Shown here: piece after piece, positions 5,934-28,510 of the stretch
Layout: each line of letters opens with the position of its first letter
Position numbering within the stretch: position 1 is the first letter of the stretch
NCBI RefSeq assembly: GCF_963853765.1
Contig: NC_088861.1
Coordinates: 3,224,001 to 3,288,000, forward strand
Direction: 5' to 3'
DNA from: Magallana gigas
Lineage: Eukaryota
DNA length: 64,000 nucleotides
Made by a program: the position numbers and the translations under genes
The notes under the pieces: model-generated
Seen by the model: only the letters and a program-made list of their open reading frames with translations
What the model was told of the DNA's origin: nothing
Databases searched by the model: none

Positions 5934-8900
5934 TTAGTCCAGATCTGACGGTTCTGGTTCCGGTACATATATCTGGAAGTTGTCATAATCACTAAGAGTC
6001 CTGCATGGAGCCTTATCAGGCTCCGTCTCTTTAGCCTTATTAATGACGACAGCAACATTACTTTCATTTTTATGACGTACATGTAACGGTCGCCATTTCC
6101 CTTCTCGGACGTTCTCGCAAACAGGTGGCTGCGCTGTAATACATTCTTCATTGTCGATGTTAATGTCAATTATAGTATTAAGGACGTCCAATGCTTTAGC
6201 CTCGTTTGTACTTGCAAAAGTGGATTTTTCGATTATTTTTTCGTCCCGGTAAGTCCATTTTGGATCGTTTGTGGAGCCACTTTTACCTGGAATCAGTTCT
6301 TCATGACTTCCTCTAAGGTACTCGTCCGATTTGACTGACACACCGTCTCCTGACTTAGCGTCACCTGGCACATCTGCATGAGATGTTCTTCTCTTCTTCA
6401 GAATGGGAAATGAACGCATGATAAATTGCATGTTAAATATAAATAAAAGAGACATTTTGATGATATTTGCTTTAAATAAAACAAGTAAATGTATGTAGAG
6501 ACATATTTTAAAGTTACAAGATAAATTATCTTCATTTATGATCAAGTACATTCATGATTGAAGAATAATTATTAAGAATATCAATATGTAAAAGAAAAAA
6601 AGTATAATTTTTTTTTTTACTATCAATTTTTTCCCTTACCATAATCCAAGACACCAAAAAACAAAAATTGAGAAAACTGCACTGGAGTGGGATTGTAAGT
6701 TGTGTAATAGGTGATATTAAATAGAAAAAAACCTTTAGTTCTGTACTTACTGCTTTAGACTTCTTGCAGTAGTATACTGTTGCTATAACAACAAGGAAAA
6801 AAACCACACAGACAGATACCGCTGCAATGACTATTATTTCCGTTTCCGTTAGGCCTGTGGGTCCTACTTGTGATTTTCTGAGGTTGAAATCATTTTCATC
6901 ATCAACTATTTCTAATATAACAAAATCATAATTATAAATTTGGAGAATGAGAACAGCAATGAATAGAAATAAAGGGCAATGCTAGGCTCCGTTTTTTCTT
7001 TCAAGTTCATGTTACTATTCCGCAGTTTATTTTTACCTGTACAGTTTGTACCACTCTCCACCACCGTCCTGTTTTCAGTGCATGGTTCACATGTGACCTG
7101 ACCCGGAAGTGGTTGATAATGACCTTCAGGACAAGGGACACATTGAGAGGATACCATGTACATTCCGTGGGCACAGGGAACTAGTAAAACAAAAACGTCA
7201 TTTTGTTTCAATGAAACATTACTAAAATGCGGCAATTTTCTACTGCTATTAAATTACATACCACAATATACTTGGCTTGTCCTGTTCACCAGATATGTCC
7301 TGTTATTACAGCTATAGGACGGACTGCCATGACTGGCAGATACTTTGGTAACGTCGGATAACCCCGAGGTACAGTTGAGTCGAAAGTACGGCATGAGTAG
7401 GGAAGGAACGTTAAGAAATATCAGCGTGATATAGTCAAGACAAACCTCACGGACGTCAACGCTTTCTTCATAGAACGTAATCAATATTGTATTTGTTATC
7501 TGCAAAGAAAGCCCAATTATAACTTTAAAGAAGATCTTTTAAACCACTCTGTTTGATACTTTTATTTAACAATGCTATCGTTGATGATCTTACTTGAAAC
7601 GCGAGTGAAACTGATGTGATGTTTTCGATCTTCACACCCCCAGCGTTTATACCCAAATCCCCACAGTAGTCTGTGATGGTCTTCTGAAATAGGTCCTTGT
7701 TTCTTTCTGTGATTTCTCGGAAATCTTGAAGACAGGACAAAGCTACTTGGTCCACAGTGCTGTAAGTCGTGTAGAGGGCGCTTGTTGTAAAGGGAATATC
7801 GTATTCTGTAGAATGAAACGAGAACACATTACCTGTCGATTTTCTTTCTTTTGAATTACCAAATATTAAATTATTATACGAATACACCCGTTTTGTATTT
7901 TTTCTTTAAAGTGGTAAACTAAATATATCCTCCTCAGGGTTTAAGCAGTTTTTGGAAACATTCTATAATCATAATTTAAACAGTATTTATTTAGTATCTA
8001 GCAATTTAGCAATGCCCAGGTTTGGTTTTAATTTTCAATGGAGAATATTTATGAAGTAAAGTGACGGTTGTTCAGAATAAGGTTTTCATTGCGATACAAA
8101 TCAAAGACAGTAAAATTACAATTAGGTTCATACCCAGACAGAGTTTCCGGTTTGGAGTCAACACATCGCCCTCACACCTGTACTCTACAGACACCTCCCC
8201 CTCACCGGTGACGTATCCACTGCTGCACTCTACCGTACAGGTTTGGTTGTGTGCAGCGCACGTGTATTTTGAATTTGGAATGGCTGAGGAAAGTTGGTCC
8301 AAACCACACGGAATGGTGTAACCTTACAACATAGAAAAACGCATATTTTGGAACATAAAATTGTCCCTAAACCGACGCATATCTTCTGTTCCAACTGCAA
8401 ATTCAAGTTTCACAATTTTCTAAAACTATTTTGTCGAGTTTTACAATCCCTTAACTGGCAACAAGTCTGACTGTACTATAACAACTTATTAAATGACATT
8501 AAGGACTCTATGCCACTTTTTATATATTTTTTAACAATCTCGTAATACAATAATGTAATACTTATTTCATACGGGTGAGAACAGATGCCTGGGATAAATA
8601 TAAACGCTGCTCCCTCCTTTGTTTAATCAAACGTTTTTATTTAAAATATTTTTGGTACGAGTTTGCTGCGTTATTACATAAAGCAATGGCCTGGTTCCTT
8701 CAATGCAATTAATCAACAAGAGACTTACTTATACAACTCTTAAGAGGAGGAAACCATCCTTCTCCGCTGCAGTTATACACTGTAGAAAGTCCCCCGTCAT
8801 CTTGTATGTACCCACCCAAGCAGGTGGACATACACATTTGATTCTCAGAGGTACACGTTAAATCAATATTTTGGGTCTTCTGGGATAGGAAAGTAGAAAC

Positions 8901-28200: not shown

Positions 28201-28510
28201 CATGACCGGAAGTGCAGGTGGACTGACAAGAGGTGGCGTTTTGATAACAGTTTTCCTGGAGTGTTGCGTTATAAAGATGTCTGGACAGTTCCTCATCATC
28301 ACAGGCGTACACTGGTTGTTACGACAAAAAAATAATAATAAGAGAAAGGCACAGTTCAGTTGGTTTAACTTAGCCCGATAAAATCTGCCTATAATGAACA
28401 TCATACTCATTGATTGTGTTTTGTTGTTCAAGAATCTATCACCTTCCACAATTCTTACCTTCTGTCTTCACAGTGATTAAACACAAAAGGAACACAGCAC
28501 AATTCCTCAT
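19221..28510 (-). CDS. Type I membrane protein, long form, about 1371 aa: signal, M1, M2, Thr-rich stalk, M3, M3', TM, tail. Exons 28510-28459, 28311-28123, 27514-27309, 27204-26955, 26442-26299, 26191-26009, 25677-25472, 24922-24682, 24264-24115, 23993-23700, 23375-23187, 22888-22650, 22555-22318, 22060-21917, 21706-21518, 21234-21023, 20928-20691, 20458-20315, 20183-20029, 19673-19221
   Basis: All 20 exons are open with GT-AG borders and compatible phases. Exon 21234-21023 relies on a cryptic acceptor, so it is less certain. Confidence 0.8.
20179..23450. repeat. Intragenic tandem duplication of a four-exon module (20179-21780 and 21781-about 23450)
   Basis: Near-identical introns and exons; junction at gacgcatatcttctattcaa|atcaactatttct. 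Confidence 0.95.
26475..26836 (+). mobile_element. Intronic palindrome-ended element (copy of 9195-9556)
   Basis: Same sequence in the same intron, so it predates the segmental duplication. Boundaries approximate. Confidence 0.6.

Follow-up and report, generated by a model that had tools for sequence, protein, structure and literature searches.

Among described extracellular proteins, SVEP1 and the SCUBE family are among the closest in composition to the system presented here, being mosaics in which CCP-like (Sushi-like) and Ephrin_rec_like repeats are found together. The same combination was identified in two tandem genes of the oyster Magallana gigas, located in a stretch of 64,000 nucleotides (nt) of contig NC_088861.1 (assembly GCF_963853765.1, positions 3,224,001 to 3,288,000), hereafter referred to as the window, in whose own numbering positions are given below. 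The two genes, named copy 1 and copy 2, are part of a tandem array that most probably encodes type I membrane glycoproteins built from repeated modules, with an ectodomain reshaped by module deletion and duplication and a putative role in surface recognition or adhesion. SCUBE1-3 were recovered among the weak fold matches. However, the oyster proteins are devoid of vWA, EGF, CUB, HYR and pentraxin domains, carry a ferredoxin-like domain between the CCP-like and GCC (Ephrin_rec_like) parts, and are predicted to be membrane-anchored, with a conserved tail of their own and a strict four-exon repeat unit.

A second group of described proteins comprises those with an extracellular beta-alpha-beta-beta-alpha-beta domain, namely MUC13, MUC1, MUC16, IMPG2 and GPR126 (SEA), PCDH15 (MAD12) and TROP2/EpCAM (C-domain), which the predicted middle domain of the oyster module resembles (Z 5.7-7.3). 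SEA-type membrane proteins also share with the oyster genes a Ser/Thr-rich stalk, a single transmembrane helix and a short tail, but the oyster domain has neither a PF01390 match nor the cleavage motif, and it displays six cysteines and a four-strand C-terminal extension. Regarding repeat number, complement receptor 1, with its CCP long homologous repeats, and oyster sperm bindin, with its F-lectin repeats, present length polymorphism. The array appears to share with them the in-frame gain and loss of whole units by unequal recombination, and differs from them in domain content and in that its own polymorphism is suggested only by differing gene models.

Structure of the two gene copies

The window is AT-rich animal DNA, with approximately 33% G+C. 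Its self-comparison revealed that copy 1 (4302-11575) and copy 2 (17601-28841) are direct copies sharing 93-94% identity, with all coding potential on the minus strand. Gene models were obtained by enumerating AG/GT sites with the required phases, together with a conserved first exon bearing the start codon and a phase-1 donor. The copy 1 model has 12 exons and an intact frame of 809 residues (807 via an alternative acceptor), and that of copy 2 has 20 exons and an intact frame of 1362 residues, identical, residue for residue, to RefSeq XP_065928635.1 (Magallana gigas). The corresponding RefSeq loci are LOC105332838 (copy 1) and LOC105332671 (copy 2). An earlier sequence-only reading of this DNA had proposed the same module orders, that is, M1, a lone Sushi and M3 in copy 1, and M1, M2, a stalk, M3 and M3′ in copy 2; these orders stand, but its lengths of about 816 and 1371 residues have to be replaced by those given above. 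Its start of the copy 2 signal exon at 28510 coincides with the model, and the signal, transmembrane and tail segments lie, as it had stated, in intact spliced frames in both copies.

The features of copy 1, with the evidence for each, are the following:

11190..11241, minus strand: exon 1, start codon and signal peptide, phase-1 donor (RNA joint 11044/11190)
10856..11044, minus strand: M1 CCP/Sushi-like exon, 189 nt, phases 1-1 (splice model, RNA joints, CCP fold match)
10024..10229, minus strand: M1 SEA-like half a, 206 nt, 1-0 (RNA joints 10229/10856 and 9920/10024)
9671..9920, minus strand: M1 SEA-like half b, 250 nt, 0-1 (RNA joint 9156/9671)
9013..9156, minus strand: M1 GCC exon, 144 nt, 1-1 (PF07699 35.1 bits, cut-off 23.1; RNA joint 8911/9013)
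8729..8911, minus strand: lone CCP/Sushi-like exon, remnant of M2, 183 nt, 1-1 (copy 1-specific RNA joint 8322/8729)
8598..8601, minus strand: intronic deletion junction with ATAT microhomology (self-comparison, intron alignment)
8134..8322, minus strand: M3 CCP/Sushi-like exon, 189 nt, 1-1 (RNA joint 7805/8134)
7594..7805, minus strand: M3 SEA-like half a, 212 nt, 1-0 (RNA joint 7499/7594)
7262..7499, minus strand: M3 SEA-like half b, 238 nt, 0-1 (RNA joint 7180/7262)
7037..7180, minus strand: M3 GCC exon, 144 nt, 1-1 (PF07699 34 bits; RNA joints)
6751..6911, minus strand: transmembrane exon, acceptors 6911 and 6905 (RNA joints 6911/7037 and 6905/7037)
5934..6395, minus strand: cytoplasmic tail and stop codon (RNA joint 6395/6751; tail conserved in three oyster genera)

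Those of copy 2 are based on the splice model identical to XP_065928635.1, with additional evidence in brackets:

28459..28510, minus strand: exon 1, start codon and signal peptide
28123..28311, minus strand: M1 CCP/Sushi-like exon
27309..27514, minus strand: M1 SEA-like half a
26955..27204, minus strand: M1 SEA-like half b
26299..26442, minus strand: M1 GCC exon (Pfam)
26009..26191, minus strand: M2 CCP/Sushi-like exon
25472..25677, minus strand: M2 SEA-like half a, not in copy 1 (its junction with the M2 Sushi-like exon, M2.Su-to-M2.Sa, seen as a loose end in RNA)
24682..24922, minus strand: M2 SEA-like half b, not in copy 1
24115..24264, minus strand: M2 GCC exon, 150 nt, not in copy 1 (Pfam)
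23700..23993, minus strand: Thr/Ser-rich stalk exon, 294 nt, 1-1, not in copy 1
23187..23375, minus strand: M3 CCP/Sushi-like exon
22650..22861, minus strand: M3 SEA-like half a
22318..22555, minus strand: M3 SEA-like half b
21917..22060, minus strand: M3 GCC exon (Pfam)
21518..21706, minus strand: M3′ CCP/Sushi-like exon of the duplicated module (self-comparison)
21023..21234, minus strand: M3′ SEA-like half a (self-comparison)
20691..20928, minus strand: M3′ SEA-like half b (self-comparison)
20315..20458, minus strand: M3′ GCC exon (self-comparison, Pfam)
20029..20183, minus strand: transmembrane exon
19221..19673, minus strand: cytoplasmic tail and stop codon (tail conservation across genera)
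20179..23450, minus strand: both units of the 1.6-kb tandem duplication giving M3′ (20179-21781 and 21781-23450)

The splice models of both copies confirmed the repeated four-exon module, composed of a Sushi-like exon (183-189 nt, phases 1-1), halves a (206-212 nt, 1-0) and b (238-250 nt, 0-1) of the middle domain, and a GCC exon (144-150 nt, 1-1). A 239-nt variant of half a that had been listed previously was dropped, since RNA places the acceptor at 7805. Ectodomain introns are in phase 1 everywhere, except for the phase-0 intron within the middle domain, and phases 1-1 also apply to the stalk exon, the Sushi-like exon and the GCC exon taken singly. Since the outer phases are 1-1, the frame survives any rearrangement whose two breakpoints fall within phase-1 introns, and frame preservation is therefore a consequence of the exon-phase design rather than a coincidence. 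The M1, M2 and M3 module types share only 22-34% protein identity, so they must be old, and corresponding modules of the two copies are 94-100% identical.

Transcription of copy 1

RNA evidence on copy 1 came from three contig runs belonging to different studies and from one stranded poly-A raw-read run, all labelled oyster. It was verified that 11 of the 11 predicted junctions are present in RNA, with CT..AC ends (corresponding to GT..AG on the minus strand). Among them is the joint peculiar to copy 1, by which the lone Sushi-like exon is spliced to that of M3 (8322/8729); it was recovered in three runs. The 5′ untranslated region extends to at least 11497, as determined by an RNA contig spanning 11190-11497, and the transmembrane exon is spliced at either of two acceptors separated by 6 nt (6911 and 6905), resulting in proteins of 809 or 807 residues. 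In the stranded run, first mates mapped only to the plus strand, which in a dUTP library means that copy 1 RNA originates from the minus strand. For copy 1, the splicing anticipated from the sequence is borne out by reads. Additionally, loose ends on copy 1 exons led to alternative partners, M2 half a and the stalk, which belong to other family members.

A six-gene tandem array

In the entire 564-Mb genome, a half-b profile detected 18 exons, all of them on the same chromosome piece and strand and within 100 kb. Exon-by-exon mapping of this array resolved six same-strand tandem genes, A to F, the first four of which lie upstream of the window on the same chromosome piece, at approximately 3,152,600-3,219,200 (loci L013-L020):

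Gene A: M1-M2-short stalk-M3; intact, 1063 residues
Gene B: architecture as in gene D; in-frame stop in the first Sushi-like exon and two acceptors destroyed
Gene C: architecture as in gene D; single-nucleotide deletion within a run of T in the transmembrane exon
Gene D: M1-M2-stalk-M3 followed by an incomplete fourth module, of which only the Sushi-like and GCC exons are present; intact, 1215 residues
Gene E (copy 1 of the window): M1-lone Sushi-M3; intact, 807/809 residues
Gene F (copy 2 of the window): M1-M2-stalk-M3-M3′; intact, 1362 residues

Four of the six genes are intact, each with a different architecture, and genes B and C look like pseudogenes, provided that the assembly is correct at the lesion bases. 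The previous claim that ectodomain length is diversifying is upheld and strengthened by the six-gene array and the four architectures of its intact members.

By exact exon-peptide matching, the RefSeq proteins XP_065928633.1 and XP_065928632.1 proved to be made up exactly of exons of genes D, C, B and A strung together, and are either chimeric models or read-through products. In the latter case, the array would represent, wholly or partly, a single transcription unit, in which read-through splices the modules of successive copies (RefSeq isoforms of 1586-1847 residues) and genes B and C act as exon donors, an idea that gains from the fact that both models skip exactly the defective B and C exons. 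However, near-identical exons allow spliced reads to be mis-assigned, so that false long introns are possible; moreover, copy 1 presents its own 5′ exon, transmembrane-tail junction and 3′ end in RNA, where a cross-gene joint was not seen on it, and the copy 2 RefSeq model is self-contained. Read-through across the array is thus considered improbable.

The high heterozygosity of oysters, the difficulty of assembling tandem repeats and the differing number of 1.6-kb repeats between assemblies could also suggest that a single gene was placed in tandem, copy 1 and copy 2 being its divergent haplotypes or a product of misassembly. Against this stand the existence of six units with distinct architectures and 1-12% divergence, the separate annotation of LOC105332838 and LOC105332671 in an older assembly and the three loci found in M. 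angulata. In addition, the copy 1-specific joint and the M2.Su-to-M2.Sa joint occur together in single RNA runs. An origin of the two copies from haplotypes or misassembly is, consequently, the least probable of the alternatives considered here, and they are treated below as distinct genes.

Two other components accompany the array. Exons of a DoxX_2-like small membrane protein were observed on the plus strand at 4812-5099, 15841-16014 and 18118-18405 (PF13564, 21-22 bits, under the cut-off of 26.3); they are located past the 3′ end of each putative receptor gene, in opposite orientation to it, and were duplicated along with the array unit. Likewise, the intron between M1 GCC and half b contains an interspersed repeat of approximately 365 nt with internal hairpins (9200-9560 in copy 1 and 26486-26844 in copy 2). 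This repeat has more than 2500 candidate copies genome-wide, with 91-93% identity, and is hugely abundant in RNA on both strands, with contig depth up to approximately 41,000. It is found in genes B, E and F and, judging from an M1 segment shorter by about 370 nt, is missing from A, C and D.

Deletion, duplication and probable exchange of segments

The difference between copies 1 and 2 could be traced to individual events. A stretch of copy 2 (23668-25877; 2.2 kb), which includes four exons (891 nt, phases 1 to 1), has no counterpart in copy 1. In the copy 1 intron between the lone Sushi-like exon and M3, the first 132 nt derive from the intron downstream of the Sushi-like exon of M2 and the last 274 nt from the post-stalk intron, the join corresponding to the ATAT microhomology. 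The copy 1 structure is, therefore, a simple intron-to-intron deletion of four exons. This deletion is the derived state, because a complete M2 is found in all other array members, in the Ostrea edulis orthologue and in an 85%-identical full-length transcript contig of 3.6 kb. Three modules plus a stalk are present in the O. edulis orthologue, in the same transcript contig and in gene A.

Concerning copy 2, M3 and M3′ share 94% identity by blastn and 98.4% over aligned positions, introns included, and because of this high identity M3′ would have arisen from a recent tandem duplication or been homogenised. Genes B-D carry the same extra unit minus its two middle exons (450 nt, frame-neutral). 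The relationships among array members also depend on the segment considered: in the M1 and M3 segments, genes B, C and D share 99% identity, with E as the outlier at 95%, whereas in the tail exon E clusters with C and D (99%) and F with A (97.6%). Because the identity pattern differs between segments, it points to probable recombination or gene conversion inside the array.

According to the proposed series of events, an ancestor with three modules and a stalk, as in Ostrea edulis and gene A, would have given rise to copy 1 through the loss of the M2 SEA-like, GCC and stalk exons in a 2.2-kb microhomology-mediated deletion, and to copy 2 through the gain of M3′ in a 1.6-kb tandem duplication. 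Genes B-D would have kept M3′ minus its two SEA-like exons, and recombination or gene conversion among array members would continually reshuffle segments. Gaining and losing modules in this way is a textbook case of exon shuffling with phase-1 modules. The gain and loss of phase-compatible modules without frameshift, put forward by the sequence-only reading, is also supported.

Variation across assemblies and species

An older M. gigas annotation of LOC105332838 (XP_011433863.2) shares 96.4% identity with copy 1, whose Sushi-Sushi junction it reproduces. At the copy 2-type locus, gene models encode 1362 residues here and 1884 in both another M. gigas assembly and M. angulata, with further isoforms of 1623 and 2150 residues. 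These lengths advance in steps of 261 residues, which is exactly one module, and correspond to four modules here and six in the other M. gigas assembly and M. angulata. Since the extra modules in these models differ from one another by 2-5% in protein sequence, they are separate genomic units and not the result of exon reuse. M. angulata also possesses a 1217-residue gene resembling gene D. Counted across related assemblies and species, protein models differ by whole 261-residue modules, which suggests, on the basis of gene models, that module copy number varies within and between sister species.

Domain composition of the module

The GCC exons were recognised by PF07699 (Ephrin_rec_like) with 34-35 bits per single exon (gathering score 23.1), and XP_065928635.1 with 58 bits over four stretches. 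In the full proteins, Pfam returned only Ephrin_rec_like and the related ELAPOR1 TNFR-like family, with no vWA, EGF, CUB, pentraxin or HYR match. A whole module was modelled with AlphaFold2 from a shallow alignment of 10 sequences (predicted local distance difference test, pLDDT, 81.8), and its residues 214-261 superpose on the Cys-rich domain of CaSR (5k5s; Z 7.1, root-mean-square deviation (rmsd) 1.1 Å over 48 residues, 25% identity). Both the passed gathering score and this fold match corroborated the identification of the GCC exon as Ephrin_rec_like. Searches of PDB sequences with one module or with the 10-module profile retrieved the GCC part only, besides very weak CCP matches of the module profile (factor XIII B, E 0.09; factor H, E 0.33). 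The top sequence match was region II of thyroglobulin (type 2 repeats, GCC2_GCC3; E 7e-5 to 9e-8), which was also the leading Foldseek match to the whole module (E 6e-8) but which falls outside the top 50 for the middle domain alone. Homology of the whole module to thyroglobulin was rejected, as the similarity is carried by the GCC region.

The name Sushi holds for the first exon as a predicted CCP fold, but not as a Pfam assignment. PF00084 (gathering score 20.7) did not match M1 or the lone exon, and its best result with M3 was sub-threshold (14.8 bits, E 0.038, C-terminal half). Residues 1-62 of the model, in turn, align with a CCP of factor H (2v8e; Z 7.3, rmsd 1.8 Å over 58 residues, 21% identity) and with those of C1s (Z 6.4-6.6), and Cys, Trp and Pro positions are invariant in the 10-module alignment, in which one extra Cys pair is also observed.

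The middle domain was modelled alone with higher confidence (pLDDT 89.8, predicted template modelling score 0.81) as a beta-alpha-beta-beta-alpha-beta sandwich followed by four short strands, with six conserved cysteines. It aligns with the SEA structures 1ivz, 6v55, 8gkl and 9nrc (MUC16, GPR126, TMPRSS6) at Z 5.7-7.3, a range that also includes the extracellular ferredoxin-like domains of TROP2 and PCDH15 MAD12; unrelated ferredoxin-like folds score equal or higher than SEA, and no match of either kind reaches Z >= 8. PF01390 (SEA) gave no match (E <= 1) to either half, to both halves joined or to the complete proteins, nor in a six-frame search of the oyster genome, in the latter case probably because the domains are split by introns. 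A G/S[VI]VV autoproteolysis motif is present in many, although not all, SEA domains. In the oyster modules this self-cleavage motif is absent, the turn reading (L/I)-(A/S/P)-F-Q followed by V/I in all of them, and the beta2-beta3 turn coincides with the phase-0 intron. Of the SEA designation proposed for this domain, the ferredoxin-like fold is retained, but a Pfam match, the cleavage motif and a distinctive fold score are lacking; 'SEA-like' would thus be acceptable as a description of the predicted fold, not as family membership.

The closest structural relatives of the middle domain are V4B999 and other invertebrate proteins of AlphaFold DB annotated as 'Sushi domain-containing' (TM-score 0.74, rmsd 3.3 Å, E 2.6e-7). 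V4B999 was the top fold match and shares with the oyster genes the Sushi name, but sequence identity is 12-16% and an exhaustive HMMER search missed these proteins, which are known here from fold matches and names. Two other searches with the middle domain were set aside, namely an ESM Atlas feature search, which yielded a lead with a score of 0.75 only and was not used, and Foldseek against PDB, which returned only generic M20-dimerisation-type ferredoxin folds (E >= 1e-3). Distant paralogues of the two-exon middle domain were located at three loci of another M. gigas chromosome (piece C7; approximately 30,938,348-30,942,651, 30,726,179 and 29,115,132, locus L022), with E 5e-9 to 8e-7 for half a and 0.004 for half b. 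The family of this domain is therefore wider than the array.

The top ESM Atlas match of the middle domain was ZPBP/Sp38 (TM-score 0.57). The whole module also aligns to residues ~115-350 of ZPBP1/2 (Sp38 + EGF_Sp38_C; E ~1e-4), which places these proteins among the best fold matches for module and middle domain alike and raises the question of whether the family serves gamete recognition, in the manner of ZPBP/Sp38 or of oyster sperm bindin, whose repeat number is variable. However, such matches are weak, no Pfam Sp38 match was obtained at E <= 1 (PF07354), and ZPBP, which is secreted and acrosomal, consists of one unit and has neither a transmembrane helix nor repeats. Moreover, the folded domains show no elevated dN/dS (the ratio of non-synonymous to synonymous substitution), and none of the RNA runs with these sequences is labelled gonad. 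A gamete-recognition role is, consequently, quite improbable.

Membrane topology, tail and function

In the translations, read by eye, the N-terminus is hydrophobic after Met-Arg, and a candidate transmembrane segment of about 23 hydrophobic residues is followed by C-K-K-S-K-A-K-R-R, with sub-threshold matches to Pfam transmembrane families. The products are thus predicted to be type I single-pass membrane glycoproteins, consisting of signal peptide, module repeats, Thr/Ser-rich stalk, transmembrane segment and tail. That they are single-pass proteins devoid of vWA, EGF, CUB and pentraxin domains had already been proposed, and agrees with the Pfam results and with the signal, transmembrane segment and conserved tail seen in translation. 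The 150-residue tail contains several blocks and motifs conserved across Magallana, Ostrea and Saccostrea, and its conservation across genera argues for a specific intracellular role. In pooled pairwise comparisons of the six genes, dN/dS was 0.34-0.62 for the folded domains and the transmembrane exon and approximately 1.1 for the tail, and in the stalk it was high, with 3 synonymous versus 31 non-synonymous differences; these pairs are non-independent, include two probable pseudogenes and are affected by active conversion. The folded domains appear, from these ratios, to be under constraint.

With the half-b profile, an exhaustive HMMER search covering 1.84 billion representative proteins retrieved only oysters (M. 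gigas, Saccostrea echinata and one fragment); two further matches, P0004 (an ankyrin/STAND protein) and P0006 (bacterial), were false positives. With a word-based search, the set grew to include O. edulis and a related transcript. The family thus appears to be oyster-restricted. It corresponds to no named family by Pfam or literature, in line with the sequence-only reading, and nothing was found in the literature under the locus names.

The Thr/Ser-rich stalk exon, the type I transmembrane layout and the weak middle-domain fold matches to the SEA domains of MUC13, IMPG1/2, MUC16, GPR126 and TMPRSS6 are also what would be expected of membrane-tethered, mucin-like glycoproteins with barrier or lubrication functions, comparable to MUC13 and MUC1, in which module number tunes only the height of the glycocalyx. 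This is the main rival to a receptor function. However, the stalk has only about 100 residues, with a shorter version in gene A and none in copy 1; the ectodomain consists mostly of Cys-rich folded domains; neither a Pfam SEA match nor a G/SVVV motif was found; and the 150-residue tail is strongly conserved across genera. A mucin-like function is therefore regarded as unlikely, although it is more plausible than the other alternatives discussed above.

The preferred interpretation remains that of an array of type I modular glycoproteins acting as cell-surface recognition or adhesion receptors. Its structural part, comprising the gene structures, the transcription of copy 1, the rearrangements, the predicted folds and the taxonomic restriction, is well supported, whereas the receptor function is inferred from architecture alone. 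The receptor label of the sequence-only reading can accordingly be kept only in that sense, given a tail without a recognised signalling domain. Some observations weigh against this interpretation. The tail matched no Pfam family and no known signalling domain, and dN/dS values below 1 for the folded domains offer no clear sign of diversifying selection at the sequence level. The shorter side of the 8322/8729 joint measures only 31-32 letters, and read-level support for junctions concerns copy 1, the structure of copy 2 resting on the RefSeq-identical model. Furthermore, the module differences between assemblies derive from gene models, some of them demonstrably chimeric, and 1.6-kb tandem repeats can be collapsed by assemblers. 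Provided that these proteins are receptors, module number would set the reach and valency of the molecule at the cell surface, and the conserved tail would serve signalling, trafficking or sorting. A further extension is put forward tentatively, and is more doubtful than not: module number may be polymorphic in living M. gigas, maybe also through module-skipping or cross-gene splicing, generating a receptor repertoire variable in length and valency, and the middle domain may define an unnamed extracellular family together with invertebrate Sushi proteins and, distantly, ZPBP.

Other features of the window

Between copy 1 and copy 2, 60-bp tandem units (12541-13037; 92-96% identical) produce a 174-residue frame of 20-residue repeats and probably represent a minisatellite rather than a gene. 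Immediately upstream of copy 2, an inverted repeat of approximately 840 bp (28843-29681 and 31245-32059; 94% identity) may correspond to a transposable element or to a segment duplicated in inverted orientation where the array ends; matches to its flanking pieces (32059-32758) occur upstream of copy 1, at 11573-12129. On the plus strand, a 486-residue open frame (44337-45797) is very rich in Thr, Ser and Pro, mucin-like, with a GC skew of -0.33, and may share a gene with the upstream open frame at 43394-43957. Tandem units of about 154 bp (57171-58135; 98-99% identical) have partial inverted copies approximately 5 kb away (52296-52803), and an assembly gap (51802-51947) is flanked by these tandem units and inverted copies. 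Neither Rfam nor tRNA scans of the window gave a match.

Significance

What is new here is the family itself, its module composition, including a domain not covered by Pfam, and the series of architectures found side by side. The chimeric RefSeq models that extend across four tandem genes would mislead expression and population studies. The middle domain lies outside Pfam, yet it has predicted structural relatives in other invertebrate proteins. Finally, the array, in which four intact architectures adjoin two decayed copies, provides a compact example of how exon-phase rules allow the gain and loss of whole modules, with breakpoints located at base resolution.

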